Origin: Pseudomonas aeruginosa PAO1
GTDB taxonomy: Bacteria > Pseudomonadota > Gammaproteobacteria > Pseudomonadales > Pseudomonadaceae
Reading direction: 5' to 3' (one strand)
DNA length: 64,000 nucleotides
Assembly: GCF_000006765.1 (NCBI RefSeq)
Contig: NC_002516.2
How positions within the stretch are numbered: position 1 is the stretch's first letter; every line of letters begins with the position of its first letter. The notes beneath the pieces were generated by a model that saw nothing but the letters and a program-made list of their open reading frames with translations, did no database searches and was not told where the DNA came from. Made by a program: the position numbers and the translations under genes. Positions 1,608 to 22,911 of this stretch are shown one piece after another.

Positions 1608-2869
1608 GGAGTGCTCTCCGCGGAAGTGGGGTCCAGAGCCGCCTCGCCGGAGCGGCTGATATGGGTTTCGGCGCCCAGCCAGGAGCAACCGACGAAGTCT
1701 TCCTGGCGGTTGTTGATGACATGGAAGACCAGGCCGTAGTCGCGCCATTCGAAGTTGCGGTCCAGGTGCGAGTCCAGCCGCGACAGGCTCAGCGCCACCG
1801 AGTAGTGCCCCTTGCCCAGGCGCATGTCGAAGGCGAAGCGGTAGGTGATGCGCTCGCCGGCCTTCAGGTCGGTGAGGGCCTTGTCCAGGCGGTGGGTATT
1901 GATCCCGTACATCGGCTGGCCGAGGCGGTCCTTGATCATGAAGCCGAGGATCAGCCGCTCGATGTCCTGGCGAACCTCGACCTCGACTTCCAGCGTCACC
2001 GCCTGGCCTACCTCGACCACCTCCAGCGCGCGCTGCCGCTGGTCGACCATCCGTACGTCGAGGATCGCTGCCTCGCCGGTGCCGGAAATCGTCCGCACCT
2101 GGCCGTCGGCGAGCATTTCCTGGCGCACGGTCTGCCCCTCGCGCTCGGCGAGCAGGGCGTTGTAGTAGTCCATCACTTCTTCCGGCCGCCCGCGCATGGC
2201 CATCCGTCCCTGCTCCAGGAGGATCGCGGAGTCGCAGATGGACTGGATCGCCGAGCGGTCGTGGGAAACGATCAGCAGGGTGGTGCCGGCCTTGCGGAAA
2301 CTGCGGATGCGCTCGAAGCTCTTGTGCTGGAAATAGGCATCGCCGACCGACAGGGCCTCGTCGACGATCAGGATGTCCGGCCGCCGGGCAGTCGCCACGC
2401 TGAACGCCAGGCGCATCTGCATGCCGCTGGAGTATGTGCGCACCGGTTGCTCGATGGCCTCGCCGATTTCGGCGAAGGCCTCGATATCCGGCATCAGCGC
2501 CTGGATTTCCTCGACCTGCATGCCCAGCAGTTGCCCGGCCATGAAGACGTTCTGCCGGCCGGTGAAGTCCGGGTGGAAGCCCATGCCCAGCTCGAGCAGC
2601 GCGGCGACCCGGCCGGCCACGCGGATCTCGCCGCAGGTCGGCTGGGTGGTGCCGGCGATCATCTTCAGCAGGGTGCTCTTGCCGGCGCCGTTGACCCCGA
2701 CGATGCCGACCGCTTCGCCCGGCTCGATGGTGAACTCGACCTCGCGCAGGATCCAGTGCAGGTGGTGGCGCGGAGGGCTGAAAGGCACCAGCCATTCGAA
2801 CAACCGGCTCCAGCGATTGGGATACTGCTTGTAGGCCTTGCCGAGGCCGGATACGCGTATCTGTCCCAT
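1604..2869 (-). CDS. wzt: O-antigen ABC transporter ATP-binding subunit with C-terminal Wzt_C domain
   Basis: Walker A GVNGAGKST, signature YSSGMQMRLAF, Walker B ILIVDE, plus a C-terminal beta-rich extension. Confidence 0.95.
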   Translation of the reverse strand: MGQIRVSGLGKAYKQYPNRWSRLFEWLVPFSPPRHHLHWILREVEFTIEPGEAVGIVGVNGAGKSTLLKMIAGTTQPTCGEIRVAGRVAALLELGMGFHPDFTGRQNVFMAGQLLGMQVEEIQALMPDIEAFAEIGEAIEQPVRTYSSGMQMRLAFSVATARRPDILIVDEALSVGDAYFQHKSFERIRSFRKAGTTLLIVSHDRSAIQSICDSAILLEQGRMAMRGRPEEVMDYYNALLAEREGQTVRQEMLADGQVRTISGTGEAAILDVRMVDQRQRALEVVEVGQAVTLEVEVEVRQDIERLILGFMIKDRLGQPMYGINTHRLDKALTDLKAGERITYRFAFDMRLGKGHYSVALSLSRLDSHLDRNFEWRDYGLVFHVINNRQEDFVGCSWLGAETHISRSGEAALDPTSAESTP

Positions 2870-3666
2870 CAGAGTTCATCCACCATTTCGCCGACCCGCT
2901 GGCGGAACAGACGCAGGCCGAGCGCGCACAGCAGCAGCGCCAGCAGGGTGATCGGCAGCAATGAAGGCCAGTCCGGCCATTGCCCGTGGAGGAACAGCTG
3001 CTGGTAGCTGCGCATCAGCGCGGTCATCGGGTTGAGTTCGATCAGCGAGCGGATACCCTCGGGCAGGATGCCGATCGGATAGACGATCGGCGTCAGCCAG
3101 AACCAGAACTGCAGGCAGATGCCGAACAACTGGCCGACGTCGCGGAAGAACACGTTGAGCACCCCGAGGATCATCCCCAGTCCCGCCGCGAACAGCACCT
3201 GGATCGCCAGCAGCGGCACCAGCGCGAGCAATGCCGCGCCCGGCAGGCGCCCGCTGAGGGCGAGAAAGCCGAGGAACAAGGCGAGGATGATGGCGAAATT
3301 GACCCCGGCGTTGAGCAGTACGATGACCGGCAGGCAGATGCGCGGGAAGCTGATCTTCTTCAGCAGGTTGGCGTTCTCGATGAACATGCTCTGGCTGCGC
3401 GAGGTGATTTCCGCGAACAGGCCCCAGGTCAGCAGGCCGGCGCAGAGATAGACGCTGTAGGCCAGGCCGTCGTCGACCCCCGGCAGGCGCGCGCGCATCA
3501 CCTGGGAGAAGATCACCGTGTAGACGACGATCATCGACAGCGGATTGAGCACCGTCCACAACGCGCCGAACAGCGACCCGCGGTAGCGCGACTGGAACTC
3601 GCGCTTGACGCTGCCGAGAACGAAGCCACGATAGCCCCACAAGGAACGAGACAAGCCAAGAAGCAT
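2869..3666 (-). CDS. wzm: O-antigen ABC transporter permease
   Basis: ABC-2 membrane protein: REFQSRYRGSLFGALW, LTPIVYP, LNPM motifs. Confidence 0.95.
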   Translation of the reverse strand: MLLGLSRSLWGYRGFVLGSVKREFQSRYRGSLFGALWTVLNPLSMIVVYTVIFSQVMRARLPGVDDGLAYSVYLCAGLLTWGLFAEITSRSQSMFIENANLLKKISFPRICLPVIVLLNAGVNFAIILALFLGFLALSGRLPGAALLALVPLLAIQVLFAAGLGMILGVLNVFFRDVGQLFGICLQFWFWLTPIVYPIGILPEGIRSLIELNPMTALMRSYQQLFLHGQWPDWPSLLPITLLALLLCALGLRLFRQRVGEMVDEL

Positions 3667-5105
3667 CAGACCACCCTGCCGTACTGGTCCTCGAAGCGGA
3701 CGATGTCGTCCTCTCCCAGGTATTCGCCGCTCTGCACCTCGATCATCACCAGGTCGATGACCCCCGGGTTTTCCAGGCGATGCCGGTGGCCCGCGGGAAT
3801 GTAGGTCGACTCGTTGCTGTTGACCAGCCGCGCGCCATCGCCATTGGTGACCCTGGCCATGCCTTGCACCACGATCCAGTGCTCGCTGCGGTGATGGTGC
3901 ATCTGCAGCGACAAGCGCTCTCCCGGCCTGACCACGATTCGCTTGATCTTGAAGCGCGGCCCCTCCTCGAGGACGGTATAGCTGCCCCAGGGACGGTTGA
4001 CGGTCCGATGCAGCCGATAGGCCTCGTGCCGCTCGTCCTTCAGCCGCTGCACCACCCTGCGCACCTCCTGGACCCGGTCGGCGCGGGCGATCAGCAGCGC
4101 ATCGGAAGTATCCACCACGACCAGGTCGTCGACCCCGACCGTGGCGACCAGGCGCCCGTCGCTCTGCACGAAGGTGTTACGGGTGTCGACGAACAGGGTG
4201 TCGCCGCTGCCGCGATTGCCCTCTGCGTCCGCGTCGAGCAGCGCGCTCATCGCGCCCCAGGAACCGATATCGCTCCAGTCGAAGGCCGCCGGCACCACGG
4301 CGACCCGCGCGGAGCGCTCCATCAGCGCATAGTCGATGGAAATGTCCGGCAGCGCGGCGAAGGCTTCGCCCGCCAGCTCATGCTGGATGCCATCGGCCAT
4401 CTTCACCGCCGCACTGGCGGCCAGGCAGGCCCTGGCCTGCTCCAGCAGGGCCGGGGCATGCTGCGCCAGCTCGTCGACCAGGGTCGAGGCCGTGAAACAG
4501 AACATCCCGGAGTTCCACAGGAAACCGCCACTTTCCACGTAGCGACGGGCGGTTTCCTCATCGGGTTTCTCGACGAAGCGGCGCACCTTGGCCGCCCCCT
4601 GCTCGTCCAGCCGGTCGCCCAGCTCGATATAGCCGAAACCGGTTTCCGCTGCGTCCGGCACCACGCCGAAGGTAACCAGGTGCCCGGCGACGGCGAGACG
4701 CGCGGCATGCCCTACCGCCTCGCGGAAGGCCTCCTCGTTGCGGATCAGGTGATCCGCCGGCATCACCACCAGTACCGCCGCGTCGCCATGTTCGGCTTGC
4801 AGCGCCAGGGCGGCGACGGCAATCGCCGGAGCGGTGTTGCGCCCGGTCGGCTCGAGGATGAAATGTCCCCGGTGCCGCCCCAGGCGGGCCGCGTGGAACT
4901 GGTCCTTGCTCTGGAAGTAATGCTCGCGGTTGGTCACCGTGACGATTTCGCCATGCCCGGCCAGGAGCCCGGCGGCACGTCGGTAGGTCTTGCCCAGCAG
5001 GGTCTGGCCATCGGGCAGGCGCATGAACGGCTTCGGCTGTCCTTCACGCGACACCGGCCAAAGGCGGGTACCGGCGCCGCCGGAAAGCACCACGGGAATC
5101 AGCAT
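3666..5105 (-). CDS. wbpW: Bifunctional mannose-1-phosphate guanylyltransferase / mannose-6-phosphate isomerase
   Basis: LSGGAGTRLWPVSR, WNSGMF, WSDIGSW and C-terminal cupin RPWGSY...SLQMHHHRSEHW. Confidence 0.95.
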   Translation of the reverse strand: MLIPVVLSGGAGTRLWPVSREGQPKPFMRLPDGQTLLGKTYRRAAGLLAGHGEIVTVTNREHYFQSKDQFHAARLGRHRGHFILEPTGRNTAPAIAVAALALQAEHGDAAVLVVMPADHLIRNEEAFREAVGHAARLAVAGHLVTFGVVPDAAETGFGYIELGDRLDEQGAAKVRRFVEKPDEETARRYVESGGFLWNSGMFCFTASTLVDELAQHAPALLEQARACLAASAAVKMADGIQHELAGEAFAALPDISIDYALMERSARVAVVPAAFDWSDIGSWGAMSALLDADAEGNRGSGDTLFVDTRNTFVQSDGRLVATVGVDDLVVVDTSDALLIARADRVQEVRRVVQRLKDERHEAYRLHRTVNRPWGSYTVLEEGPRFKIKRIVVRPGERLSLQMHHHRSEHWIVVQGMARVTNGDGARLVNSNESTYIPAGHRHRLENPGVIDLVMIEVQSGEYLGEDDIVRFEDQYGRVV

Positions 5106-5108
5106 GGC

Positions 5109-6991
<1,883 letters not shown>

Positions 6992-9027: not shown

Positions 9028-10322
9028 TCATCATCCACTCCGAGACCAACAAGACCACCATCCGGCAGAACCTCGGGCGCCCGGAGTACAGCTATTACTT
9101 CGTCCTCAAGGAATTCCGTCCGCTGCTGGAAGAGATCGGCCAGGTGGTCGAAGTCAGCGATCCCGACGAACTGGTGGACCGCCTCTACCACGACTGCCGC
9201 AAGCGCGGCGAACCCTGTGTCTTCCTCTCCTTCTCGCCGCCCCATCGCACGCCGATCCACCATGCCTGCCCGACCATCCCGGTGTTCGCCTGGGAGTTCA
9301 GCACCCTCCCCAGCGAAACCTGGCACGGCGAACCGCGCCACGACTGGCGACATGTGCTGCGCCACAGCGGACGGGCCATCACCCACTCCAGCTTCACGGT
9401 CGACGTGGTGCGCGCCGCCATGGGTCGCGACTACCCGGTACTGAGCGTGCCGGCGCCGGTCTGGGATCGCTTCGCCAACCGCGCCTCGCAGCAGGCGGGC
9501 CGTCCCGAAGCCCGGGATGTGCGCCTGCGCCTGGACGGCCTGCTGGTGGACAGCCGCCAGCTGGACCTGGCCGTCCATGCCGACCCCGAGCCGTCGGCGG
9601 AGGTCCTGGCCCTGCCGGACCGCGCGGCGAAACAGGTCGAGCTGAGCCTCGACGGGGTCATCTACACCTCGGTGTTCAACCCCTACGACGGGCGCAAGAA
9701 CTGGCAGGACATGATCAGCGCGTTCTGCGCCACCTTCCGCGACGAGCCCGACGCCACCCTGGTGCTGAAACTGACCCACCACAACGTCGGCGAAGCGCTG
9801 GCCGACATGCTTCACCACCTGTACAAGAACCAGTCCTACCGCTGCCGCATCGTGCTGATCCACGGCTACCTCGCCGACCCGGACTACGAGCGGCTGGTCG
9901 AGGCCACCAGCTACGTGGTGAACACCTCCTACGGCGAAGGCCAATGCCTGCCGCTGATGGAATTCATGTCCAGCGGCAAGCCGGCCGTGGCTCCGCGCAA
10001 TACCGCGATGATCGACTACATCGACGCCGACAACGCCTTCATCGTCGACTCCTCGGAAGAAGCCACCGCCTGGCCCCACGACCCGCGCGCGGCCTACCGC
10101 ACGCTGCGCTACATCACCGACTGGGAGTCGCTGTGCCGGGCCTACCGGGCCAGTTTCGAGGTCGCTCGCCAGGAGCCGGAGCGCTACGCACGCATGTCCG
10201 CGCATGCCAGCGCCAGCCTCGAACGCTTCTGCAGCCGCAAGCTGGCCGTGGAGCGCCTGCGTCGCTTCTTCGACGAAGCGGCACAAGGCGACCCCTCCGC
10301 CTTGCAAAGCATCCCGGCATGA
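9021..10322 (+). CDS. Glycosyltransferase (GT4-like), paralog of the upstream gene (PA5456-like)
   Basis: MLIIIHSET start. Shares LGRPEYSYYFVLK, SVFNPxDGRKNW and EGxCLPLMEFMS with 7399-9027. Confidence 0.87.
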   Translation: MLIIIHSETNKTTIRQNLGRPEYSYYFVLKEFRPLLEEIGQVVEVSDPDELVDRLYHDCRKRGEPCVFLSFSPPHRTPIHHACPTIPVFAWEFSTLPSETWHGEPRHDWRHVLRHSGRAITHSSFTVDVVRAAMGRDYPVLSVPAPVWDRFANRASQQAGRPEARDVRLRLDGLLVDSRQLDLAVHADPEPSAEVLALPDRAAKQVELSLDGVIYTSVFNPYDGRKNWQDMISAFCATFRDEPDATLVLKLTHHNVGEALADMLHHLYKNQSYRCRIVLIHGYLADPDYERLVEATSYVVNTSYGEGQCLPLMEFMSSGKPAVAPRNTAMIDYIDADNAFIVDSSEEATAWPHDPRAAYRTLRYITDWESLCRAYRASFEVARQEPERYARMSAHASASLERFCSRKLAVERLRRFFDEAAQGDPSALQSIPA

Positions 10323-11182
10323 TCCGCGCCCTGCTCCAACGCTGGCGTTCCCGTCCCGCTGCGGCGAGCGAACCGGTGTCGCCACGCATGTGCGGTCTGC
10401 GCGATGCGGTGCTGGATGGCTGGTTCCGCAGCGAAACCGGCGAACTGCTCGCCGGCTTCGCCATCGGCGCCCAGGACACCCTGCTCGATCTCGGCTGCGG
10501 CGAAGGCGTCGCCACCCTCTTCGCCGCCCGCCAGGGCGCTTCGGTGATCTTCACCGACAGCGAGGAGGACAAGGTGCGGAGCCTGGCGCAGCAGGTCGAG
10601 GCGGTGGCCCGGCGGCCCTTCACCGGCCTGGTCAGCGACAGCGACCCGCTGCCGCTGCGCGACGCCTGCGCCGACAAGCTGGTGTGCATGGAAGTGCTCG
10701 AACACGTGGCCAACCCAGCGCGGGTGATGGCCGAACTCGTGCGTCTCGGCCGCCCTGGCGCGCAGTACCTGCTGAGCGTGCCGGACCCGGTCGGCGAACA
10801 CCTGCAGCAGGGCATCGCCCCGGCCGACTACTTCCGGGCGCCCAACCACATCCACATCTTTTCCCGTGACGACTTCGCGCGCTTGGTGCAGGACGCCGGG
10901 CTGGTCATCGAGCACCGCCAGGCCAGCGGCTTCTTCTGGGTGATGGGCATGATCTTCTTCTGGGCCAGCGAAAGGGCCGCCGGCCGTGAGCTCGGCGGCG
11001 CCGTCCGCGACCGTATCCAGCCGCCCTACCCGGCGCTGATGGAAGACTGGGCACGGCTCTGGGAAAACCTCCTGGCCCGTCCCGACGGCCTGGAGATCAA
11101 GCACCTGCTCGACCATTTCATGCCCAAGAGCCAGGTGATCATCGCGCGCAAGCCGCTCGACCCCGGATCGTCGCGGACATGA
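10319..11182 (+). CDS. SAM-dependent methyltransferase (PA5457-like)
   Basis: Motif I LLDLGCGEG and CMEVLEHV; ATGA overlap with the upstream gene. Confidence 0.88.
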   Translation: MIRALLQRWRSRPAAASEPVSPRMCGLRDAVLDGWFRSETGELLAGFAIGAQDTLLDLGCGEGVATLFAARQGASVIFTDSEEDKVRSLAQQVEAVARRPFTGLVSDSDPLPLRDACADKLVCMEVLEHVANPARVMAELVRLGRPGAQYLLSVPDPVGEHLQQGIAPADYFRAPNHIHIFSRDDFARLVQDAGLVIEHRQASGFFWVMGMIFFWASERAAGRELGGAVRDRIQPPYPALMEDWARLWENLLARPDGLEIKHLLDHFMPKSQVIIARKPLDPGSSRT

Positions 11183-12321
11183 GCGGCAAACGCATCCTCG
11201 ACATCGAACTGTTGCGCGGGCTGGCCGTGCTCGGCGTGGTATTCCACCATCTGCACGGCAACCTGTTCAGCGGCTCCCCGGCACTGCTGGACGGCATCAA
11301 CCAGCGCGTCCAGTTCTGGTGGGGCGTGGACCTGTTCTTCGCCATCTCCGGCTTCGTCATCGCCCGCACCCTCATCCCGCAACTGCGCGAGGCGCCCACA
11401 CGCCAGGCATTCTGGGAACAGGCGCGGTACTTCTGGATTCGCCGCGCCTTCCGCCTGCTGCCCTCGGCCTGGCTGTGGCTGGCGCTGATCCTGGCCTGTT
11501 GCCTGCTGCTGAACCGCTCCGGAGCCTTCGGCAGCCTGTCGGCCAACCTCGCGGCGAGCCTCGCCGGTTTCCTCCAGGTCGCCAACTTCCGCTTCGCCGA
11601 CAGTTTCTACCGCTACGAATACGGTGCCAGCTTCGTCTACTGGAGCCTTTCCCTGGAGGAACAGTTCTACCTCCTGCTGCCGCTGCTGATCCTCTGCCTG
11701 CGTCGCTACCTGGGCTGGGCCCTCCTGGCGCTGGTGCTGGTCCAGTTCTTCAGCCTGCGCACGCCGCTGCTGATGGTATTGCGCACCGACGCCCTGGCCA
11801 TCGGCGTACTGCTCGCCCTCGCCTCCCTGCAGCCTGGCTATGCCCGCTGGAACCCCACCCTGCTGGGCCGCGCCTGGAGCGGGCCGTTGCTGCTGGCCGC
11901 CGTGGCCGCGGCCCTGGGCGTGCTGGCCAGCGAAGCGTACAGCCTGGTCGCCGTGCGGATCGGCGCCATCGCGCTATTGTGCGGACTGCTGGTGTGGATA
12001 GCCTCCTACGACCGCGACTACCTGCTCTCCAACGGGCCGCTGAAGCGCTTGCTGGTCTGGGTCGGCGCGCGCTCCTATGCGATCTACCTGATCCACATCC
12101 CGGCGTTCTATCTCAGTCGCGAACTCTGCTTCCGCCTGGGCTGGGACGCCGGCGAGCGGCCCCTGTCGCTGCTCGGCACCAGCCTGGTCCTGATCGTCGT
12201 ACTCAGCGAGCTCAACTACCGCTTCGTCGAGAGCCCCTGCCGCGACCTGGGCTCCCGCCTGGTCAAGCGCCTGAGCGCCGCCCGCCGCGTCGCCACCACT
12301 TCCGGAGCCACCTCATGCTGA
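11179..12321 (+). CDS. OafA-like membrane acyltransferase (Acyl_transf_3)
   Basis: IELLRGLAVLGVV, GVDLFFAISGFVI, WSLSLEEQFY and SYAIYLIH motifs; multi-TM. Confidence 0.9.
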   Translation: MSGKRILDIELLRGLAVLGVVFHHLHGNLFSGSPALLDGINQRVQFWWGVDLFFAISGFVIARTLIPQLREAPTRQAFWEQARYFWIRRAFRLLPSAWLWLALILACCLLLNRSGAFGSLSANLAASLAGFLQVANFRFADSFYRYEYGASFVYWSLSLEEQFYLLLPLLILCLRRYLGWALLALVLVQFFSLRTPLLMVLRTDALAIGVLLALASLQPGYARWNPTLLGRAWSGPLLLAAVAAALGVLASEAYSLVAVRIGAIALLCGLLVWIASYDRDYLLSNGPLKRLLVWVGARSYAIYLIHIPAFYLSRELCFRLGWDAGERPLSLLGTSLVLIVVLSELNYRFVESPCRDLGSRLVKRLSAARRVATTSGATSC

Positions 12322-13151
12322 ACTTCCTCAAGAAGATCGTCTCGCCGCCCAGCCCCGCCACCGAGCCCGTCGCCGCGCCACCCGCCCCCGCGCCGGTCGA
12401 CCCGTACATGCTCGGGTTGCGCGACGCGGTGCTCAGCGGCTGGTTCAACCAGGAGACCGACGAGCTGTTCAGCGGCTTTCCGATTTCCGCCGAGGACACC
12501 GTGCTCGACGTGGGGTGCGGCGACGGCGGCAACGTTCATTTCTGCGCCATGCGCGGCGCTCGCATCATCATCGCCGACATCGACGCGGAAAAGATCGCCA
12601 GGACCCGCGAGCGCCTGGCCGATACCCCGGCCCGCGAACTGGAATGCCTGGTCAGCGACTGCGACCCGCTGCCCCTGGCTGACGCCACGGCCACCCGGGT
12701 GGTCTCCACCGAGGTCATCGAGCACGTCGACGATCCGCGGCAGTTCCTCGCCGAGCTGGTGCGGGTCGGCCAGCCCGGCGCACTCTATCTGCTCAGCGTG
12801 CCGCATCCCACGTCGGAAGACCTGCAGAAAGACTTCGCCGCCGACGAATACTTCCGCAAACCCAACCACATCCGCGTGCTCGGCGAGGAGCAGTTCGCCG
12901 CACTGGTGCGCGAAGCCGGGCTGGAAATCCTCAGCCACAGCCGCTACGGCTTCTACTGGTCGCTGTGGATGCTGCTGTTCTGGGAGGCCAAGGTCGATTT
13001 CGGCAATCCCGACCATCCCCTCCTCGAACACTGGGCCAGGACCTGGCAGGCGCTGCTCGACTCGCCGCGCGGCCCGGCCATCAAGCAGGCCCTGGACGCC
13101 GTGGTCGCCAAGAGCCAGGTGATCATCGCGCGCAAGCCCGCCCAGGCGTAG
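12315..13151 (+). CDS. SAM-dependent methyltransferase (PA5459-like), paralog of 10319-11182
   Basis: VLDVGCGDG, STEVIEHV; shares GLRDAVLxGWF and KSQVIIARKP with its paralog. Confidence 0.88.
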   Translation: MLNFLKKIVSPPSPATEPVAAPPAPAPVDPYMLGLRDAVLSGWFNQETDELFSGFPISAEDTVLDVGCGDGGNVHFCAMRGARIIIADIDAEKIARTRERLADTPARELECLVSDCDPLPLADATATRVVSTEVIEHVDDPRQFLAELVRVGQPGALYLLSVPHPTSEDLQKDFAADEYFRKPNHIRVLGEEQFAALVREAGLEILSHSRYGFYWSLWMLLFWEAKVDFGNPDHPLLEHWARTWQALLDSPRGPAIKQALDAVVAKSQVIIARKPAQA

Positions 13152-13157
13152 AGCCAC

Positions 13158-13214
13158 CGGAACAGTTCCGCTACAGCCGGGCGGAACAGTTGCCGGGGCC
13201 ACCGAACTGTTCCG
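13158..13214. promoter_or_regulatory. Three copies of CGGAACAGTT (two direct, one inverted); candidate operator
   Basis: Copies at 13158-13167 (+), 13182-13191 (+) and 13205-13214 (-), upstream of the DUF1127 gene. Confidence 0.5.
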
Positions 13215-13313
13215 TCCAACTCCCGCGTGGTTGCCCCTGAGCAAGCCAGCGGTCCCGGCGCATCATGAGGTTCCACACCCCGCCCCCATCCCCGGGATGG
13301 GAAGGAACGCACG

Positions 13314-13526
13314 ATGAGGACATCCCCGCACCCGCACGCCGGGAGCTCCAGCGGTCTCCCGGCTGCCCATCCACATCTCGCCGCCCTGCTGGAAAAATTG
13401 AATTCCTGGCGACAAAACGCTCGATCGCGCAAGCATCTTGCGCAAATGTCCGAACACGACCTCGCCGACCTGGCGATCAGCCCGAGCGAACGCTACGTAG
13501 AGATTTCGAAACCTTTCTGGCGCTGA
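13314..13526 (+). CDS. DUF1127 (YjiS-like) small protein, 70 aa
   Basis: AAGGA RBS; family hallmark W-R-x4-RSRKHLAQMSEHDLADLAI...KPFWR. Confidence 0.85.
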   Translation: MRTSPHPHAGSSSGLPAAHPHLAALLEKLNSWRQNARSRKHLAQMSEHDLADLAISPSERYVEISKPFWR

Positions 13527-13621
13527 GCCGCTGGTGACGTGGCGCACAGTTGGTTAGTCTCAGCGTTGACACGGCCGCGCGGATGCGGCCGTCTACGCTG
13601 ACTTCGTTCGGAGCAACTCAC

Positions 13622-13939
13622 ATGAAACGTCTGCGCCTGATCGGTGCCGCTGCCCTGCTCGCCTGCGCCTCCAGCGCGTTCGCCAGCAGCTTCGTGGTCA
13701 CCACGGATACCCTGGTCCGCGCCACCGGCATGACCTCCAATGCCACTTCGGACATCACCAATTCCTTCCGCGACGACAAGATCGTCCTCGAAGCGCGCGA
13801 CGACGCCGCCAGCTTCGTCGCCAGCCAGGGCGACATCCGCGGTTCGCACCTGGAAGCCGCACTGCGCCACATCCGTGGCAAGCTGCCGAGCCTGGCCGCC
13901 AACGACATGCAACTGGCCCAGGCGATCCTGACCATCTGA
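13622..13939 (+). CDS. Secreted DUF2388-family protein (copy 1)
   Basis: Signal peptide ending AFA; motif ARDDAASFVASQGDIRGSHLEAAL. Confidence 0.85.
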   Translation: MKRLRLIGAAALLACASSAFASSFVVTTDTLVRATGMTSNATSDITNSFRDDKIVLEARDDAASFVASQGDIRGSHLEAALRHIRGKLPSLAANDMQLAQAILTI

Positions 13940-14063
13940 GTCGCCCGCCCCGCCGCCGCAGCCGCCCGGCTGCGGCGATGACCTGGCCGACCGGCCACAC
14001 TGGCTCCGCGCCGCACATTCCGTTAGCCTTGACGGCTGTTCCAGTCCTATTCCGCCCAACCCC

Positions 14064-14357
14064 ATGCGTTACCGGTTCTCGTTGCTCTTCTGTTGCCTGC
14101 TGGCGCCCGCTGCGCACGCCTTCGATACCACGACGGCGTTCACCGCGAAGTCCCTTTACGTCACCAGCAAGCTGACCAGCACGCCGTTCGAGAACAAATT
14201 GTTACGCGATGCCCGGGGCGATGCGGCCAGCTTCGTCGCCAGCGATGGCAGCATCCGTGGTGCGCGCCTGGAAGCGGCGCTGCGCTGGTTGCGTGTCGCG
14301 CACCCCGAGCTGGCGGCCAGCGATCAGGAACTGGCCGAAGCAATTCTTGCCCAATAG
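14064..14357 (+). CDS. Secreted DUF2388-family protein (copy 2)
   Basis: Signal peptide ending AHA; motif ARGDAASFVASDGSIRGARLEAAL. Confidence 0.85.
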   Translation: MRYRFSLLFCCLLAPAAHAFDTTTAFTAKSLYVTSKLTSTPFENKLLRDARGDAASFVASDGSIRGARLEAALRWLRVAHPELAASDQELAEAILAQ

Positions 14358-14385
14358 GCGATCACCACCGTTCCGGAGAACCTCC

Positions 14386-14721
14386 ATGCGCCGTAGCTCC
14401 ATGCGTCATAGCCCCCTGTTCGCCGCCCTGCTGCTGGCGCTCTGCGCCACGGCCGCGGAAGCACGCTCGGTGGTCGCGACCAGCAATATCATCGTCCGCG
14501 CCCTCGACCGCAGCATCGACTTCACTTCCGACACCACCACTTCCGTGCGCGACATGAAAGTGGTCACCGAGGCGCGCGACGACGCCGCCAGTTTCGTCGC
14601 CAGCGACGGCGCCATTCGCGGCGCCCAGCTGGAAGCCGCGATGCGGACCCTGCGCAGCCGTCTGCCGGAAGCCCGGGAAGCCTCCGACCAGGTACTTGCC
14701 GAAGCCATTCTCGCCCTGTGA
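14386..14721 (+). CDS. Secreted DUF2388-family protein (copy 3)
   Basis: GGAGA RBS; signal peptide ending AEA; motif ARDDAASFVASDGAIRGAQLEAAM. Alternative start at 14401. Confidence 0.85.
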   Translation: MRRSSMRHSPLFAALLLALCATAAEARSVVATSNIIVRALDRSIDFTSDTTTSVRDMKVVTEARDDAASFVASDGAIRGAQLEAAMRTLRSRLPEAREASDQVLAEAILAL

Positions 14722-16676
14722 GGAAGGCCTGCGCCTGGCTGCTGGCGCTGGCCCTCTGCGGAGCCGGCAACGCGACGGCGGCCCTGCGCCTGAAACTCGA
14801 CGCGCCTGGGCTGGACCCTGCGCAGCGCGAGGCCAGCCAGCAACTCTTGGACGAAGCCGCGGACAAGTTGCCGCCGGCCTTCCGCGAACGCCTGGACCGC
14901 GAGATCGAGGTCGAGTGGCGCGACGACCTGCCCGCCAACGGCATGGGCCAGGCCCGTGGCCCGCAGCGCATCGCGCTGAACCGCAAGTACCTGGCCGATC
15001 TCACCGACGGCAGCGCCGCCAGCCGCCAGACCGGGCGCGTGCACGGCACCGAGCGGCGCGAGCTGCTGGCGACCCTGCTGCACGAGCTGACCCACGTCTA
15101 CGATCGCGCGCGCCTGTGGTCGGCGGAGGAAAAACGCGAGATCCGCCGCTGCACGCGCCAGGAAGAAACCCTCGGCCGGATCGCCCAGCCCACCGATTGC
15201 CGCGGGCAGAGCGGTCGCCGCTTCACGCTCTCCGACGACCCGCGCCTGCTCGATCTCGCCGGCTGGCCGCAGCGCACCGGCCAGCGCGGGCGGCGCGAGG
15301 CGCACAATGGCTTCGTACTGCGCAGCCCGGACGTCTACGAGCTGAGCAATCCGCGCGAGTTCGTCGCGGTGAACATGGAGTACTTCCTCCTCGATCCCAG
15401 CTACGCCTGCCGCCGCCCGGCGCTCTACCGCTACTACCAGCAACGCTTCGGCTGGGCGCCGGAACACAGTGCCTGTGCGCAGAGCTTCGCCTACCTCAAC
15501 GCCGGCCGCGACTTCGGCCAGCAGCCGCTGGGCCAGCTCGACCCCGAGCGGGTCTACGAGGTCGACTACCTGCTGGCCGAGGCCAACGACAACCTGGTCA
15601 GCCGCTGGGGCCACACCATGCTCCGCCTGGTGATCTGCGCCCCCGGCCGGCCGCGTGGGCCGGACTGCCGGCTGGACCTCGACCAGCATCTGGTGCTGTC
15701 CTACCGCGCCTTCGTCGGCGACCTGCAATTGTCCAGCTGGGACGGCCTGACCGGCGCCTATCCGTCGCGCCTGTTCGTCCTGCCGCTGTCGCAGGTGATC
15801 GAGGAATACACCAAGGTCGAGCTGCGCAGCCTCGCCTCGGTGCCGCTGAAGCTGGACCGCGAGGAGGTCGCCAGCCTGGTCGAGCGCGCCGCGCAGAGTC
15901 ACTGGAGCTACGACGGTCAGTACTACTTCATCTCCAACAATTGCGCGGTGGAAACCCTCAAGCTGCTGCGCAGCGGCATCCCCCGGCGACCGCTGCAAAG
16001 CCTGGACAGCATCACCCCCTACGGCGTGCTCGAGATGCTGGAGAACCGCAAGCTGGCCGATCCCAGTGTGCTCGACGACCCCAAGGAAGCCCTGCGCCTG
16101 GGCTACCGCTTCGACTCCTTCCGCGACCGCTACCAGGCGATGTTCGACGTGCTCAAGCAGCGCCTGCACATTCCCCAGGACAAGGTCGAGGACTGGCTGG
16201 CGCTGCCGGCCAGGGAGCGCCAGCCCTGGTTCGCCAAGGCCGACCTGCGCGCCAGCGCGGCGCTGCTGCTGCTCGAGCAGGCCTCGCTGCGGCGCCAGCT
16301 GCTGCTCGCCCAGGACGAGTTGAAGCGCCTGTACCTCGGCCATCTGGACAAGCCGGCCGGCGACCAGCGCCTGGAAGTGGCCGGCAAGACCTTCCAGCAG
16401 ATCCTCGACGACAGCGGCTTCCTCAGTCGTCCGGCGGAACTCCTGGAGGGCGGCTACGGCCTGCCGCAGGCCGCCGAGTGGAAGCACCTGGAAGAGCAGA
16501 CCCGCGAACGCCAGGCGCGCCTGCGCCGGCTCAGCGACGACCTCGACCGCGAGGTCCGCGCCCTGCTCGATCCCGAGCGCCGCGCCGAGCTGGAAGCCAA
16601 CGAGGCCAACATCAAGGAGGTCGGCGCGCACCTGCGCGAGCTGCACAAGGCGGCCGGCGGGCTGATGCTGCCCTGA
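14718..16676 (+). CDS. Exported DUF4105 (Lnb_N-like) domain protein with N-terminal HExxH zincin-like domain, 652 aa
   Basis: GTGA overlap with DUF2388 copy 3; signal peptide; HELTH, WGHTMLR and YYFISNNCAVE motifs. Confidence 0.8.
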   Translation: MRKACAWLLALALCGAGNATAALRLKLDAPGLDPAQREASQQLLDEAADKLPPAFRERLDREIEVEWRDDLPANGMGQARGPQRIALNRKYLADLTDGSAASRQTGRVHGTERRELLATLLHELTHVYDRARLWSAEEKREIRRCTRQEETLGRIAQPTDCRGQSGRRFTLSDDPRLLDLAGWPQRTGQRGRREAHNGFVLRSPDVYELSNPREFVAVNMEYFLLDPSYACRRPALYRYYQQRFGWAPEHSACAQSFAYLNAGRDFGQQPLGQLDPERVYEVDYLLAEANDNLVSRWGHTMLRLVICAPGRPRGPDCRLDLDQHLVLSYRAFVGDLQLSSWDGLTGAYPSRLFVLPLSQVIEEYTKVELRSLASVPLKLDREEVASLVERAAQSHWSYDGQYYFISNNCAVETLKLLRSGIPRRPLQSLDSITPYGVLEMLENRKLADPSVLDDPKEALRLGYRFDSFRDRYQAMFDVLKQRLHIPQDKVEDWLALPARERQPWFAKADLRASAALLLLEQASLRRQLLLAQDELKRLYLGHLDKPAGDQRLEVAGKTFQQILDDSGFLSRPAELLEGGYGLPQAAEWKHLEEQTRERQARLRRLSDDLDREVRALLDPERRAELEANEANIKEVGAHLRELHKAAGGLMLP

Positions 16677-16730
16677 GGGAGGCGCCTGCAGGACGCATGG
16701 TCCCGAGCGCTCTTCCAGCGCCTCGCAGAC

Positions 16731-16761
16731 GGCGGATAACGCTCTGCGTTATTCGCCCTAC
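16731..16761 (-). repeat. GTAG-type REP palindrome
   Basis: Minus strand GTAG-GGCGAATAACGC-AGA-GCGTTATCCGCC, between convergent genes. Confidence 0.75.
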
Positions 16762-16783
16762 AGGTGCCACCTCCGGTCTTCGC

Positions 16784-17203
16784 TCACGGGTCGTCCGCTC
16801 CGGCGATGAACTCCTCGTCCTCTTCGGGCAACTGCGGGTCGAGGTGTAGCCATGGCAGGCGGCTGCCGACCCAGATGTGCCGGTTGGCGGGGGCGCGCTC
16901 GGGATGGTCGAGGCTGGCCACGGTGAAGTCCAGGGTATCGGCGCTGAGCCGGGTGAACAACGCCAGGTTGGCCCCGCAACGCGGACAGAAGTAGCGCGTG
17001 CAGCTGGCCGACGAGGCATATTCCGCCGGTTCGCCCGCCAGCCAGCGGAACGCCGCGCGCGGCACCGTGGCCCAGGTGGTGACGATGCCGCCTGTGGTGC
17101 GCCGGCAGATCGAGCAGTGGCAGTGAGCGACATCGTCCAGCGGCGCGGCGACGGCGTAGCGCAGATAGCCGCAATGGCAACCGCCGGTATGGGTCTCGGG
17201 CAT
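16784..17203 (-). CDS. GFA/CENP-V family zinc-binding protein
   Basis: GGCHCG...HCHCSICRR...YFCPRCG cysteine pattern. Confidence 0.88.
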   Translation of the reverse strand: MPETHTGGCHCGYLRYAVAAPLDDVAHCHCSICRRTTGGIVTTWATVPRAAFRWLAGEPAEYASSASCTRYFCPRCGANLALFTRLSADTLDFTVASLDHPERAPANRHIWVGSRLPWLHLDPQLPEEDEEFIAGADDP

Positions 17204-17270
17204 GGCGAATCCTCCTCGCGGGAGTGCCAGCATAAGCCGGACTTGCCCTGTGCCGCAGCCACCTCGCAAG

Positions 17271-18215
17271 ATGAGCGGATTCCACTATCCGGGGGTGCCC
17301 GTGACCGCTCTGCTCTACTCCCTCTGGCCGCTGTTCGCCCTCATCGTCGGCGGTTACGCCCTGCGCCGCTGGGACTTTCCCGGCGAAGCCTTCTGGCCTG
17401 CCGCAGAACGCCTGAACTACTTCATCCTGTTTCCCGCGCTGCTGTTCAGCAACCTGGCGACCGCGCCGCTGGACGACCCCGGCCTGGCCCGCCAGGCCCT
17501 GGCCGTACTGCTCGGGCTCGGCGTCGCCTGGCTCGCCCTGCTGCTCTGCAAGCGCTGGCGCGGCTGGGACGCCGGGCGCTTCGGCGCCATCGCCCAGGGC
17601 GTATTGCGCTTCAACACCTATCTCGGCCTGGCCGCGGTCGGCAGCCTGTACGGCAAGCCGGGCCTGACCCTGGCCGCGCTGATGCTGGCGCTGATGGTGC
17701 CGACGGTGAACGTGATGTCGGTCTGGGCGCTGACCGCCGAGCGCGGCATCAGCCTGCGCGCGCTGCTGCTGCCGATCCTGAAGAACCCGCTGATCCTCGC
17801 CTGCCTCGCCGGCGCACTGGTCAACCTGGCCGGCGTCGGCCTGCCCGGCGGCAGCGATCGCCTGCTCAACCTGCTGGCGGTGGCCAGCCTGCCGCTGGGC
17901 CTGCTGTGCGTCGGCGCGGCGCTGAAACCCCAGGAACTCGGCGGCGAAGTCGCGGCCCTTGGCTGGAACTGCGCGGCGCGGCTGCTGGCGATGCCCCTGC
18001 TGGCCTTCGCCATCGCTCGCGGGCTGGGCCTGCCGAGCATGGAAAGCGCCGTGCTGGTACTGTTCTTCGCCCTGCCGACGGCGCCCACCGCCTATGTGCT
18101 GACCCGCCAACTGGGCGGCGACGGCCACCTGATGGCGGGCATCATTACCTTGCAAACGCTGCTTTCCGGCGCCACTCTGGTCGGCGTACTCCTCGTGCTG
18201 CAAGGAAGCCCATGA
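17271..18215 (+). CDS. AEC (auxin efflux carrier) family transporter
   Basis: About 10 TM segments; LNYFILFPALLF, KNPLILA, LPTAPTAY. Start may be the GTG at 17301. Confidence 0.85.
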   Translation: MSGFHYPGVPVTALLYSLWPLFALIVGGYALRRWDFPGEAFWPAAERLNYFILFPALLFSNLATAPLDDPGLARQALAVLLGLGVAWLALLLCKRWRGWDAGRFGAIAQGVLRFNTYLGLAAVGSLYGKPGLTLAALMLALMVPTVNVMSVWALTAERGISLRALLLPILKNPLILACLAGALVNLAGVGLPGGSDRLLNLLAVASLPLGLLCVGAALKPQELGGEVAALGWNCAARLLAMPLLAFAIARGLGLPSMESAVLVLFFALPTAPTAYVLTRQLGGDGHLMAGIITLQTLLSGATLVGVLLVLQGSP

Positions 18216-18574
18216 CGACAGGACGCGTCGCCGCCGCCCTCACGGCGCTCTGCCTGCTCTGCCAACCGGCCTTCGGTTTCATCAAGGTGTTTCCCGAATT
18301 CGACGACGAACCCGGCGCCGCCACCTTCTTCTGGGCGGCCGTCACCACCGTCGGCCCGTTCATCGGCAGCACCGTCAGCGCACAGGAGTCCAGCGCTGAC
18401 GAGGGCGACAAGCTCGTCCAGGCGCGGGACGACGCCGCCAGCTTCGTCGCCAGCGACGGTGCGATCCGTGGCGCGTACCTCCAGGCAGCCTTGCAGGTCC
18501 TGCGCCAGGCCCCGGAATACGCCGGGTACAGCGACCTGCAACTGGCCGCGGCGCTCCTCGCGCGGCAGCCCTGA
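18212..18574 (+). CDS. Secreted DUF2388-family protein (copy 4)
   Basis: ATGA overlap with the AEC gene; motif ARDDAASFVASDGAIRGAYLQAAL. Confidence 0.85.
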   Translation: MTTGRVAAALTALCLLCQPAFGFIKVFPEFDDEPGAATFFWAAVTTVGPFIGSTVSAQESSADEGDKLVQARDDAASFVASDGAIRGAYLQAALQVLRQAPEYAGYSDLQLAAALLARQP

Positions 18575-18716
18575 TCGACCACATATCCGAAATTACCCGC
18601 ACGTTTCCCGCCGTTATCCAGCGAAAGCTGCCTGAAAGCTTCCCGCCGTAGCATCCGCCCACCACCGGCAGAAGACCGGACACGACGGCGCGCCCACGAG
18701 ACGCCCGCTTACCCGT

Positions 18717-18729
18717 ACAAAAACAACAA
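18717..18729 (+). promoter_or_regulatory. A-rich catabolite-activity (Hfq/Crc) motif candidate
   Basis: ACAAAAACAACAA fits AAnAAnAA in the leader of an organic-acid transporter. Confidence 0.45.
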
Positions 18730-18853
18730 TGGTGATTGCCATGCCCCGTTCCGCACACGCCTACAGCCGCACTCCGTCCGCGCGACGCCACCCGCCCGCC
18801 GCCTGCTGACCGCACGCCGCACGCCCGTCCGCCGTCTTCCCCGGAGTGAACCC

Positions 18854-20948: not shown

Positions 20949-21563
20949 TCAGGCCGGCTCGAAACGCTCGCCGCGGAATACCCGGCGAGCCGCGCCGCGA
21001 CTGATCCGACCGTGGGCCCGGCGGCGCTCCGCGCGCAGCGCGTCGGCCGCGCTGCTCGCCTGGTCCGCGAGGCGCCGGGCGATCAGCAGGATCGCCAGGC
21101 GTTTGTTGGCGTGCTGGCTACGCTGGCTCTGCACCCTGACGCTGATGCCGCTGGCCAGGTGGGTGGCGCGCACCGCCGAGTCGGTGGTGTTGACATGCTG
21201 GCCGCCGGGGCCGGAAGAGCGCAGGGTCTCGAAACGGATCTCGCCCTCCAGACTGGCCGGCGGCGCGGCGAAGCGCTCCGCGCCGATGAACCAGTTCTTG
21301 CGCGCATGCCTTGCCCGGTAGGGGCTGGGGCAGATCCACTGGATACCGCCGCACCAGCGCTCGGCGAGCGCTTCGGCGGCAGTGCCGCGCAGCCCCAGGA
21401 GCAGCGAACGCCAGGTGCGCGGACGCTCGCCGGCCACCTCCTCGATTACCTCGACCTCGACGCCGGCTTGCGCCGCCTCGAGGCACAGCCGCTCGAACGC
21501 CTTCGCCACCGCCAGGCAGCATTCCGCCGGCCCCTGGGCCGCGGAGAGTTGCAGCAGGATCAT
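20949..21563 (-). CDS. prfH: Peptide chain release factor homolog PrfH
   Basis: [15 protein letters not shown] start; RKNWFIG and [17 protein letters not shown] (GGQ); ATGA overlap with the upstream rtcB-like gene. Confidence 0.93.
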
Positions 21564-22699
21564 CGGCAGCACTCCCCACGGGTCTTGTAGGTCAGCACCG
21601 GCTTCAGGCGGGCGACCAGGCGCAGCAGGCCGGCTTCGAGCAGCGCGCCGACCACCGAGTCGATACCCTTGTAGGCTTCCGGCGCTTCCTCGTAGATCAG
21701 CTGGCGGTCGCCACAGATCACCCGGCTGCCAAGGCGCGTACGGCCCAACTGGTCGACGCTGAAGCGCGCCGCCAGACGCTCCCGACACTCGCCGCGCTGC
21801 CATTTGCGACCGGCGCCGTGGGCCAGGGAGAACAGGCTCTGCGCGCTCGGCACAGGCTCCACCAGGTAGCTGTAGTCGCCGCGCGAACCGGGGATCACCA
21901 GCACGCCCTGGTCGGCCGGGGTGGCGCCCTTGCGGTGCAGCCAGCCGTCGACGCCATCGACCTGTGCCGGCACCACCAGGTTGTGGTTGATGTCGAGCAG
22001 TTCCAGGCCGTCGCAGCGCAAGCGTTCGAGAATGCGCCGGGCGATGAGCTGGCGGTTACCCTCGGCGAAGCGCAGCGCATCGGCGTGGCGCGCCAGGTAG
22101 GCGGAAGCTTCCAGGCTGCCGTCGAGCAGGCCGGCGTGGCCGTGCAGGCTGACATGCTCTTGCAGGATCGCCTGGCCGAGCCCGCGCGAGCCGCTGTGCA
22201 CCAGCAGTTGCAGGCGATCGGCATCGAGGCCGAGGGCGTGCAGGGCAGCCTGGTCGAACACCGTCTCGACCTGCTGTAGCTCGGCGAAGTGGTTGCCGCC
22301 ACCGATCGTGCCGAGCGCGCGCCAGTGCTCGCGGGCCGGTAGATCCAGGGCTTCGATGCAGTCGCTCCAGGTCTCGTCCAGCGGCAGGTCGAGATTGCCC
22401 AGGCGCTTTTCCAGTTTGTCCGCCGACAGCTTGCCGAGGGCCAGGCCGGTTTCCCACAGGGCCATGCCACAGCCGATGTCGTTGCCGACCAGCGCCGGAT
22501 AGAAGCGACCGACGGAGAAGAACGCCGCGCCGACCGGATAGCCGCGGCCGGGATGCAGGTCCGGGAGACCGACGACGCGGCACATGCCGTCCAGTTCGGC
22601 GGTGGTTTGCAGTTGCTGGATCGCCTTGCCTTCGATCCAGGTGCTGTCCGAGGCGATCAGTGCGACGCCCGCGGACAAAGGCTTGATGTAGTTGCCCAT
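21560..22699 (-). CDS. armZ: RtcB-family RNA ligase homolog; MexZ anti-repressor ArmZ (PA5471)
   Basis: [41 protein letters not shown] motifs; 379 aa. Confidence 0.9.
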
Positions 22700-22911
22700 A
22701 ATCCAATCCATGTGATTGAAACGGTAGATCCGGGGGGCAGACCGAAGCCGAGCGGGCACTCGCGGAAGGGCGAAGGGCGTCTAACGGAGAAGTGAAAACC
22801 TGGGGAGCGGTGACCGCGGCAGCCGATGACCTCTCGCCGGAAGCTTGCGCGGACGCAAGGGCGGGAATCGTTCAGCGGTGCAGGGGGTCGAGCGGTAGGT
22901 TTCGGTGGCCG

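Follow-up and report, generated by a model that had tools for sequence, protein, structure and literature searches.

Small exported DUF2388 proteins and a predicted two-domain periplasmic enzyme very likely form one uncharacterised envelope module in Pseudomonas

MtfA, a cytoplasmic protein of one domain, binds the repressor Mlc and has aminopeptidase activity. Lnb is the lipoprotein N-acyltransferase of Bacteroides, and its catalytic periplasmic domain, Lnb_N, works through Cys148, for which an Asn66-His49-Cys148 triad has been proposed (bioRxiv 10.1101/2024.05.31.596883). The Lnb_N fold was given a function only in 2024. Here we analysed a stretch of 64,000 nucleotides from Pseudomonas aeruginosa PAO1 (contig NC_002516.2), called the window below, which contains a cluster of genes for small exported proteins of the DUF2388 family and for a 652-residue exported protein in which domains resembling MtfA and Lnb_N are predicted to be joined. 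We refer to the large protein as the enzyme.

Counted back from PA5466-PA5468, the locus tags are probably PA5461-PA5463 for the small genes in tandem and PA5464 for the enzyme gene. In the searched literature we found no described function for any of the module's five proteins; DUF2388 appears there in three papers, as passing mentions or in gene lists only, and of PA5461-PA5464 just PA5463 is named, in a single microarray list. The domain folds are known, and their fusion, the soluble periplasmic setting and a dedicated DUF2388 partner are not described in the searched literature. Judged from sequence, the cluster appears to be a robust, genus-wide, uncharacterised envelope module.

Linkage of DUF2388 and the enzyme across genomes

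A six-frame hidden Markov model scan of the whole window found a single enzyme gene and exactly four copies of DUF2388. All four small open reading frames (ORFs) score above the curated cut-offs of Pfam DUF2388 (74-112 bits, cut-off 25) and NCBIfam TIGR02448 (69-141 bits, cut-off 53.85). Three of them are in tandem, and the TGA of the third (paralog 3, which ends ...CTG TGA) overlaps the GTG start of the 652-residue ORF as GTGA. The product of this ORF is 100% identical to "DUF4105 domain-containing protein [P. aeruginosa]", a cluster of 1236 sequences.

We surveyed one genome per species and kept the best 80 enzyme loci, all of which are from Pseudomonas and whose enzyme orthologs show 67-79% identity. 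We found two or three DUF2388 ORFs directly 5' of the enzyme gene and on the same strand in 79 of the 80; in the lone exception the enzyme gene lies at a contig edge. Three matches were present in 73 of the linked loci, one more has three ORFs (a duplicate domain match counted four), and five have two. Judged by E-values, the five two-copy species keep copies like paralogs 1 and 3 (groups 1 and 3 below) and are missing paralog 2, which is the least conserved paralog. The identical GTGA overlap between the last small gene and the enzyme gene was found in 77 of the 79 loci.

The evidence from distant lineages consists of ten single look-ups. In Luteimonas a single DUF2388 gene ends 0-6 nucleotides 5' of a gene for a DUF7844+Lnb_N protein of 604-606 residues, and in the marine Pseudomonadales genome CP087705.1 and related marine contigs a DUF2388 gene either overlaps the enzyme gene by 4 nucleotides or lies 6 nucleotides 5' of it. 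The flanking genes of the Luteimonas and marine loci share nothing with each other or with the window. Two low-GC genomes encode enzymes that are only 39-40% identical; here a divergent DUF2388 gene is convergent with the enzyme gene and 3' of it (CP178621.1) or lies 190 nucleotides 5' of it (CP030082.1). We also scanned metagenome contigs with a non-Pseudomonas DUF2388 alignment and counted as informative the 61 loci with at least 500 nucleotides downstream. The enzyme gene follows DUF2388 directly on the 3' side in 39 of these (39 of the 44 that are not of the orphan type described next).

An orphan DUF2388 subfamily (ADVDA.DVATSAGVSASLYSTFKDDKLMIPARDDASSFVAS) makes up 17 of the 61 informative loci. 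Its mature N-terminus reads DVDA.DVATSAGVSASLYSTFKD (loci L090/L091, 6001..6300, and L120-L169), and in Pseudomonas it occupies a conserved locus with a DinB-like gene on one side and an ICMT/PEMT-like gene on the other, never beside the enzyme. Paralog 4 of the window is also apart. Its ATG overlaps the TGA of the AEC-transporter gene as ATGA, so that it is coupled to this transporter and not to the enzyme and stands outside the tandem operon. PA5466-PA5467 has been named as an operon, with the first gene given as "AEC family transporter" (PMC12606150). For the transporter, the ATG at 17271 is probably the true start. Paralog 4 has close orthologs in P. aeruginosa and P. paraeruginosa only, and no DUF2388 gene was found within 10 kb 3' of the enzyme in the 80 Pseudomonas species loci.

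These results bear on an earlier note on this DNA, made from the sequence alone, which had described four small DUF2388 proteins with Sec-type signal peptides, three in tandem and the third coupled through GTGA to the 652-residue exported protein, and had suggested a functional tie between DUF2388 and DUF4105. The sequence bears out the description, with proteins of 97-120 residues, and the tie held up when co-occurrence was examined in Pseudomonas and other lineages. The note had also grouped the fourth paralog with the enzyme, and this has to be withdrawn in favour of its coupling to the AEC transporter within the P. aeruginosa lineage.

One could read the adjacency as inherited gene order only, with the small proteins acting apart from the enzyme; orphan DUF2388 genes do exist, and paralog 4 is coupled to a transporter instead. 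However, the adjacency is kept across wholly different neighbourhoods and through an inversion of the small gene, and the 4-nucleotide overlap is fixed genus-wide. We take this as strong evidence of a joint function for the two families, a conclusion we hold with high confidence, and regard mere inheritance of gene order as very improbable. DUF2388 and the enzyme very likely constitute one uncharacterised cell-envelope system, a pairing that recurs in several distant bacterial groups.

Several distant enzyme homologs adjoin other unannotated genes of small or medium size whose products look exported or lipoprotein-like. Examples are a 354-residue papain-like protein (QWCYAFSA motif) that overlaps the enzyme start (L093, 3940..5004), a 292-residue lipoprotein-like protein (L081, 1321..2199), and secreted proteins of 135, 140 and 111 residues (L174, 5956..6363; L176, 2044..2466; L175, 3435..3770). 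The C-terminal halves of the last three look DUF2388-like by eye, and hhalign gave probabilities below 5% for them, which is not significant. No fusion of DUF2388 to the enzyme was found in 270 enzyme homologs.

Tails, folds and predicted active sites

All four DUF2388 paralogs begin with a basic region that is followed by a hydrophobic stretch and then by an AxA-type cleavage motif, with predicted cleavage sites AFA/S, AHA/F, AEA/R and AFG/F (the slash marks the cut); these signal peptides were called by eye and hydropathy. We considered the small proteins as lipoproteins and rejected this, as no typical lipobox precedes the Cys residues of the signal peptides, with Leu at -1 in paralogs 3 and 4, and AxA sites follow. 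The four proteins have 97-120 residues and a single N-terminal hydrophobic segment, a layout shared by 97 aligned relatives. Public records P0477 and P0480 label DUF2388 proteins "Holliday junction resolvasome, helicase subunit". This looks like a propagated misannotation, and neither the sequence nor the model described below supports the label.

The paralogs are 57-73% identical to each other over the core, from ARDDAAS to the C-terminus, and 8-44% identical over the mature N-terminal segment, which we call the tail. Invariant residues are concentrated in ARDDAASFVAS.G.IRG and in the C-terminal LA.A.L, and the near-invariant stretch of the helical domain is ARDDAASFVASDGAIRG. An AlphaFold2 (AF2) model of paralog 3, built with the 97 aligned relatives, has a helical domain at residues ~55-111 with pLDDT ~90, and the mature N-terminal 30 residues are of low confidence. 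A fold search of the PDB with the DUF2388 model gave no match below E = 4, and a four-paralog profile run against the sequences of solved structures gave low-complexity matches only.

The tails differ among the paralogs and yet are kept within each orthologous group across Pseudomonas, under purifying selection. Paralog 1 starts SSFVVTTD... after cleavage. Across 74 three-copy Pseudomonas loci the tail of group 1 reads A/[ST]SF[IV]VTTD...ATSD.TSSFRDDKIV, that of group 2 A/FD.ST...YATS.VTSAPFD.KL, and that of group 3 A/.[TS]LVATSNIIVRA..R.IDFTSDTTTSIRD.KIV; a TSD.T.S.RD.K.V pattern is common to paralogs 1 and 3. In Lysobacterales the tail is of low complexity, rich in Ser, Gly, Thr and Ala, with [SG]SFAGT right after the signal-peptide site and GDDK[VI]V at its end. 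Paralog 4 has a longer N-terminal part in which a moderately hydrophobic extra stretch, GAATFFWAAVTTVGPFIGSTV (Kyte-Doolittle 1.26), lies between signal peptide and core. The divergent N-terminal segment and near-invariant core reported in the earlier note are thus found as described. Its phrase "variable N-termini on a constant scaffold" stands for the comparison between paralogs and falls for that between species, where each tail is conserved across the genus. This conservation within ortholog groups points to three old, specialised paralogs rather than a hypervariable cassette.

In the enzyme only residues 1-27 are hydrophobic. We found no membrane helix, as no 19-residue window after residue 27 exceeds a Kyte-Doolittle value of 1.0. 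The AF2 model (pLDDT 94.6, pTM 0.92) is that of a soluble multi-domain protein. The same earlier note had called the large protein a DUF4105 enzyme. The Lnb_N/DUF4105 domain is present; the DUF7844 zincin domain that precedes it and the 210-residue tail that follows it had been overlooked.

We aligned 125 homologs of 28-78% identity, drawn from 1285 clusters in a library of 50%-identity representatives. G298, H299, N408, C409, C307 and C317 are invariant in this alignment, and H122, E123, H126, E214, E221, C231, C253, H324, D320 and E412 are conserved in at least 90% of the sequences; C145 and C161 are at least 90% conserved in a 30-sequence alignment. The mature enzyme has six conserved Cys plus the lone Cys409, and together with the sole hydrophobic segment at the N-terminus this fits a soluble protein in the oxidising periplasm. 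We conclude that the enzyme is, as predicted from its sequence, a soluble periplasmic protein, unlike the membrane protein Lnb.

The HExxH motif of the DUF7844 domain is H122-E123-L-T-H126. The enzyme-family profile matches MtfA across the HExxH helix and an "E.FAV..EYF" segment (9srw_E, E 0.0036; 3dl1, E 0.02), and E214 falls at the position of the third zinc ligand. The best Foldseek matches of the enzyme model in the PDB are 3dl1 (probability 0.97), 3khi (0.90) and the SprT-type protease Wss1 (0.90). The DUF7844 region has sub-threshold Pfam matches to Peptidase_M90, SprT-like and M76, of which Peptidase_M90 scores 17.7 bits against a cut-off of 26.2 and is matched in the C-terminal 40 positions of the family only. 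The related fold and the sub-threshold M90 score indicate that DUF7844 is an MtfA-type gluzincin that nonetheless forms a separate family.

The Lnb_N/DUF4105 domain is a permuted NlpC/P60 domain with His299 and Asn408-Cys409. The context N-C-A-x-E may be comparable to the NCEHF motif of LRAT/PLAAT acyltransferases. NlpC/P60 structures such as TseH are absent from the top 50 Foldseek matches when the whole enzyme model is the query, and a single-sequence search of the enzyme against solved structures gave no match. The C-terminal tail of the enzyme (residues 443-652, 210 residues) has no Pfam match. It forms long helices in the AF2 model (residues 510-544, 550-570, 585-614 and 619-645) and gave weak BAR/F-BAR-like matches only in Foldseek (E > 2).

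The NlpC/P60 relationship raises the question of an interbacterial toxin-immunity module, with the enzyme as an effector that targets lipids and the small proteins of the tandem as immunity proteins against it. Tandem small periplasmic partner genes resemble immunity arrays. DUF4105 is moreover the sister of the Tox-Act1 clade of type VI secretion system (T6SS) effectors (PMC12994826). The enzyme, however, has its own Sec signal peptide and is a syntenic core gene in the 80 Pseudomonas species, at the level of identity given above; the small genes lie 5' of it and not 3', and the flanks in the window hold lipopolysaccharide (LPS)-modification, transporter and ribosome-rescue genes with no genes of a secretion system. 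We therefore consider an effector with immunity proteins highly implausible.

Another possibility is a saposin-like role, in which DUF2388 would act as a small helical carrier or activator and supply the enzyme with a membrane lipid or some other substrate. The real substrates of the enzyme would then be envelope lipids or lipoproteins. Several paralogs per enzyme recall multi-activator systems, the DUF2388 domain is a small all-helical bundle with no match in the PDB, and the enzyme is soluble while its Lnb_N relatives use membrane lipids. The DUF2388 domain, however, is Ala-rich, fairly polar and free of disulfides, a lipid-binding cavity in it is hypothetical, and the conserved motif at the mature N-terminus would be left unexplained. 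We regard such carriers as unlikely.

Possible roles of the small proteins

We observed the anatomy of the proteins, the conservation of the catalytic residues and the linkage of the genes across lineages. In the reading that we tentatively favour, the helical domain of DUF2388 would dock on the enzyme and its flexible N-terminal tail would be cut and/or acylated; the docking, the part acted on, the chemistry and the acyl donor are inferred. The three tandem DUF2388 genes and the gene for the large protein would make up one conserved periplasmic module, with an enzyme that is exported by Sec and would remain soluble. Two active sites are predicted, an MtfA-like zinc peptidase with HExxH and Glu214, and an LRAT/Lnb-like site in which an acyl-thioester would form on Cys409 with His299 as the base. 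In each DUF2388 protein, removal of the signal peptide would leave a flexible tail, beginning at the signal-peptidase cut, in front of a helical domain of ~55 residues. The docked domain would present the tail to the catalytic sites, where the peptidase would trim it and/or the Cys-His domain would acylate it. The small proteins would thus be dedicated clients, and three paralogs would supply three distinct tails. The acyl donor may be a membrane phospholipid, by analogy with Lnb and LRAT-type enzymes.

Docking is suggested by the combination of a near-invariant folded domain with a flexible tail that begins at the signal-peptidase site, and by an enzyme that combines peptidase-type and acyl-transfer sites and whose closest characterised relative modifies a protein N-terminus. 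We favour clients over obligate subunits because the orphan paralogs, the three specialised tails per enzyme and the hairpin after paralog 1 suit clients better; this hairpin might allow paralog 1 to be expressed at a higher level than the enzyme. Also consistent with a client are the conserved motif right where the signal peptide is cut ([ST]SF for Pseudomonas group 1, [SG]SFAGT for Lysobacterales) and a tail that is of low complexity in Lysobacterales and of low confidence in the AF2 model, next to a confidently modelled C-terminal domain.

In the alternative that comes closest, DUF2388 would regulate or inhibit the enzyme as a subunit: with the helical domain docked, the tail would lie as a pseudo-substrate in the peptidase or acyl-transfer site. 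An enzyme that could damage membranes would then be kept silent until a signal removes DUF2388. The small gene lies 5' of the enzyme gene and overlaps its start in several lineages, so that the partner would be made first and in step. A 17-residue stretch hardly varies across all paralog types, which is what a single common interface would predict. MtfA, structurally nearest to the zincin domain, owes its name to the binding of a partner protein, Mlc, and the sister clade of DUF4105 includes lipid-targeting toxins that need protective partners (PMC12994826). What an inhibitor does not explain is why a single enzyme should have three non-redundant paralogs throughout the genus, why orphan paralogs are found far from the enzyme, and why many enzyme homologs have no detectable DUF2388. 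A pseudo-substrate inhibitor accounts for the data nearly as well as a client, with the translational coupling in its favour, and we consider it possible.

Several observations weigh against our client reading. Genes coupled this tightly in translation more typically encode stoichiometric partners, such as subunits or inhibitors, than an enzyme and its substrate. The tails are kept among orthologs and are not hypervariable like typical precursor-peptide cores, and the mature N-terminal residue varies by paralog group (S/T, F, Q/R), with no common acceptor residue evident. Five SSFAGT-type metagenome loci have no enzyme in the available downstream sequence (1.2 to 6 kb), and for two of the five the 6 kb on each side hold no enzyme match at all. 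Next to some distant enzyme homologs no DUF2388 gene is recognisable, and the enzyme family, with 1285 clusters at 50% identity, is far broader than detectable DUF2388. This indicates that the enzyme must also function without DUF2388. The M90 score stays under the family cut-off and the peptidase activity is a prediction only, and binding, cleavage and acylation of the small proteins by the enzyme are all inferred.

A stronger form of the client reading, which we consider rather doubtful, is that the module is a lipobox-independent pathway of protein lipidation and maturation in the Gram-negative periplasm. With DUF2388 docked through its invariant helical domain after signal-peptidase cleavage, the Cys409 acyl-enzyme would pass an acyl chain from a membrane phospholipid to the free N-terminus or to the Ser/Thr-rich tail, and the tail would afterwards be trimmed or released by the zincin domain. 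If this were true, every Pseudomonas genome would encode membrane-anchored small proteins or lipopeptides that have so far gone unseen.

Essentially all the Pseudomonas species sampled carry the module, among them the opportunistic pathogen P. aeruginosa and species associated with plants, and it also occurs in Lysobacterales and other lineages. Its enzyme joins two catalytic folds, and for each of them an action on the N-termini of proteins or on membrane lipids is known. Were the small proteins clients, the module would add a new way in which proteins are modified in the cell envelope; were they inhibitors, it would hold a regulated periplasmic enzyme that remodels lipids or proteins. Either way, five "hypothetical" core genes become a testable system, and point mutants of E123 and C409 follow directly from the sequence.

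Gene surroundings and comparison with known systems

The features of the cluster are listed in Table 1. The gap between paralogs 1 and 2 is 125 nucleotides long and holds the GC hairpin, the stem of which begins 16 nucleotides past the stop of paralog 1; the segment 13938-13995 folds at -31.6 kcal/mol (z -2.7). A GC hairpin after the paralog 1 stop is found in many other Pseudomonas species too (intergenic regions of L001-L013). It is possible that it serves as an attenuator or transcript stabiliser. A possible -10 element, TTAG[CGT]CT, recurs 5' of both paralog 1 and paralog 2 in Pseudomonas loci and, taken with the hairpin, suggests separate or graded expression of paralog 1. An upstream alignment from 73 species shows conserved blocks, ACGTGGCG...GTCT[GC]A (in many species) and TTAG[CGT]CT; we left the sigma factor unassigned because the block spacing varies between P. 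aeruginosa and the P. fluorescens group. A promoter and terminator scan of 13200-18900 found no sigma-70-like promoter, and its sole terminator-like site lies 3' of paralog 4, within the start of the citrate-transporter gene.

Table 1. Positions of the features of the DUF2388 cluster in the window
Feature	Position	Strand	Remarks
DUF1127 protein	13314..13526	+	70 residues; Pfam E 2e-12
DUF2388 paralog 1	13622..13939	+	105 residues; Pfam PF09498 E 1.9e-32, TIGR02448 E 9.6e-42
GC hairpin after paralog 1	13955..13976		perfect 9-bp stem, 4-nucleotide loop, U-tract absent
DUF2388 paralog 2	14064..14357	+	97 residues; Pfam E 1e-31, TIGR02448 E 3.9e-38
DUF2388 paralog 3	14386..14721	+	111 residues, or 106 if ATG 14401 is the start; Pfam E 1.6e-31
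Sec-exported soluble enzyme (predicted)	14718..16676	+	652 residues; signal peptide, DUF7844, Lnb_N, helical tail
DUF7844 domain	14787..15473	+	residues 24-252; Pfam E 2e-113
HExxH motif, H122-E123-x-x-H126	15081..15095	+	in DUF7844 domain
Lnb_N/DUF4105 domain	15528..16043	+	residues 271-442; Pfam Lnb_N E 1.3e-27
His299 codon	15612..15614	+	in Lnb_N/DUF4105 domain
Cys409 codon	15942..15944	+	in Lnb_N/DUF4105 domain
C-terminal helical tail of enzyme	16044..16673	+	residues 443-652; conserved Y580-G581-x-P583
AEC-family transporter (PA5466)	17202..18215	+	Pfam Mem_trans E 1e-14
DUF2388 paralog 4 (PA5467)	18212..18574	+	120 residues, ATG at 18212; Pfam E 9.8e-21

A second, strong hairpin, of 12 bp (GGCGGAUAACGC / GCGUUAUUCGCC, ~16731..16757), lies between the convergent enzyme and GFA genes. 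The region of 121 nucleotides around it folds at -59.4 kcal/mol (z -3.4), and the hairpin is probably a bidirectional terminator or a REP-like element. The G+C content of the window is ~0.67. On the 5' side of the cluster are two class-I methyltransferase genes either side of an Acyl_transf_3 acyltransferase gene, followed by the DUF1127 gene; on the 3' side are a GFA-family protein on the opposite strand, the AEC transporter, a CitMHS citrate transporter, a TerC protein and a pair of RF-1-domain and RtcB proteins. The DUF1127 gene ends ~95 nucleotides 5' of paralog 1. A coding end "...ISKPFWR stop" precedes paralog 1 in the P. nitroreducens-group loci L001-L010 too, so that the DUF1127 gene appears to travel with the cluster in this group.

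The two methyltransferase genes are paralogous and, with the acyltransferase gene between them, occupy 9944..13151 (+), directly 5' of the cluster. These genes are presumably the end of the common-polysaccharide-antigen LPS locus, and the minus-strand ORFs at 1604..6991, which are of the size of wzm, wzt, gmd and rmd, are presumably part of the LPS locus as well. The RF-1-domain (PrfH-like) and RtcB-domain proteins are encoded in tandem at 20949..22759 (-) and are PA5470 and PA5471 by the published gene order, in which PA5468, a citrate transporter, is followed by PA5469, by PA5470, a peptide chain release factor, and by PA5471. A genomic-library selection picked out PA5471 as the aminoglycoside-resistance determinant (PMC2771283).

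Compared with known systems, the cluster resembles the gene arrays of ribosomally synthesized and post-translationally modified peptides (RiPPs) in that tandem small genes lie directly 5' of a protease or transferase gene, in that the small proteins share a recognition-like part and differ in another, and in the hairpin after the first small gene. It differs in that the constant part is a folded C-terminal domain and the differing part is kept among orthologs, and in that DUF2388 is exported by a Sec signal peptide, with no dedicated transporter or other tailoring genes.

The T6SS effectors Tox-Act1 and TseH, of a sister clade of DUF4105, share with the enzyme the permuted NlpC/P60 superfamily and a catalytic His and Cys, and are lipid-directed (PMC12994826). 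These effectors are delivered by the T6SS and encoded in conflict loci with immunity genes, whereas the enzyme is Sec-exported and belongs to the core genome in a housekeeping context. We saw no T6SS, Rhs or PAAR neighbours; the neighbours of the enzyme are methyltransferases, an acyltransferase, DUF1127, GFA, and AEC and citrate transporters.

MtfA (MEROPS M90; PDB 3dl1, 3khi, 9srw) is the best structural match of the enzyme, with a probability of 0.97, and the HExxH helix and the E..FAV..EYF motif of the two align. In contrast to MtfA, the zincin domain of the enzyme is predicted to be exported, is disulfide-rich, is fused to a domain of acyltransferase type and falls under the Pfam M90 cut-off.

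The enzyme differs from Lnb in that it has 652 residues, is soluble apart from its signal peptide, and has an added zincin domain and helical tail. The Lnb report cites "the well-studied Lnt of ... Pseudomonas aeruginosa" (bioRxiv 10.1101/2024.05.31.596883), so that there is no missing N-acyltransferase for the enzyme to replace. Since it has no membrane helices and Lnt is already present in P. aeruginosa, we conclude that the enzyme is not the orthologue of Lnb. What the two have in common is the Lnb_N domain with its conserved His...Cys pair, at a spacing of 110 residues in the enzyme and 99 in Lnb; both domains face the periplasm, and the substrate of Lnb is a protein N-terminus.

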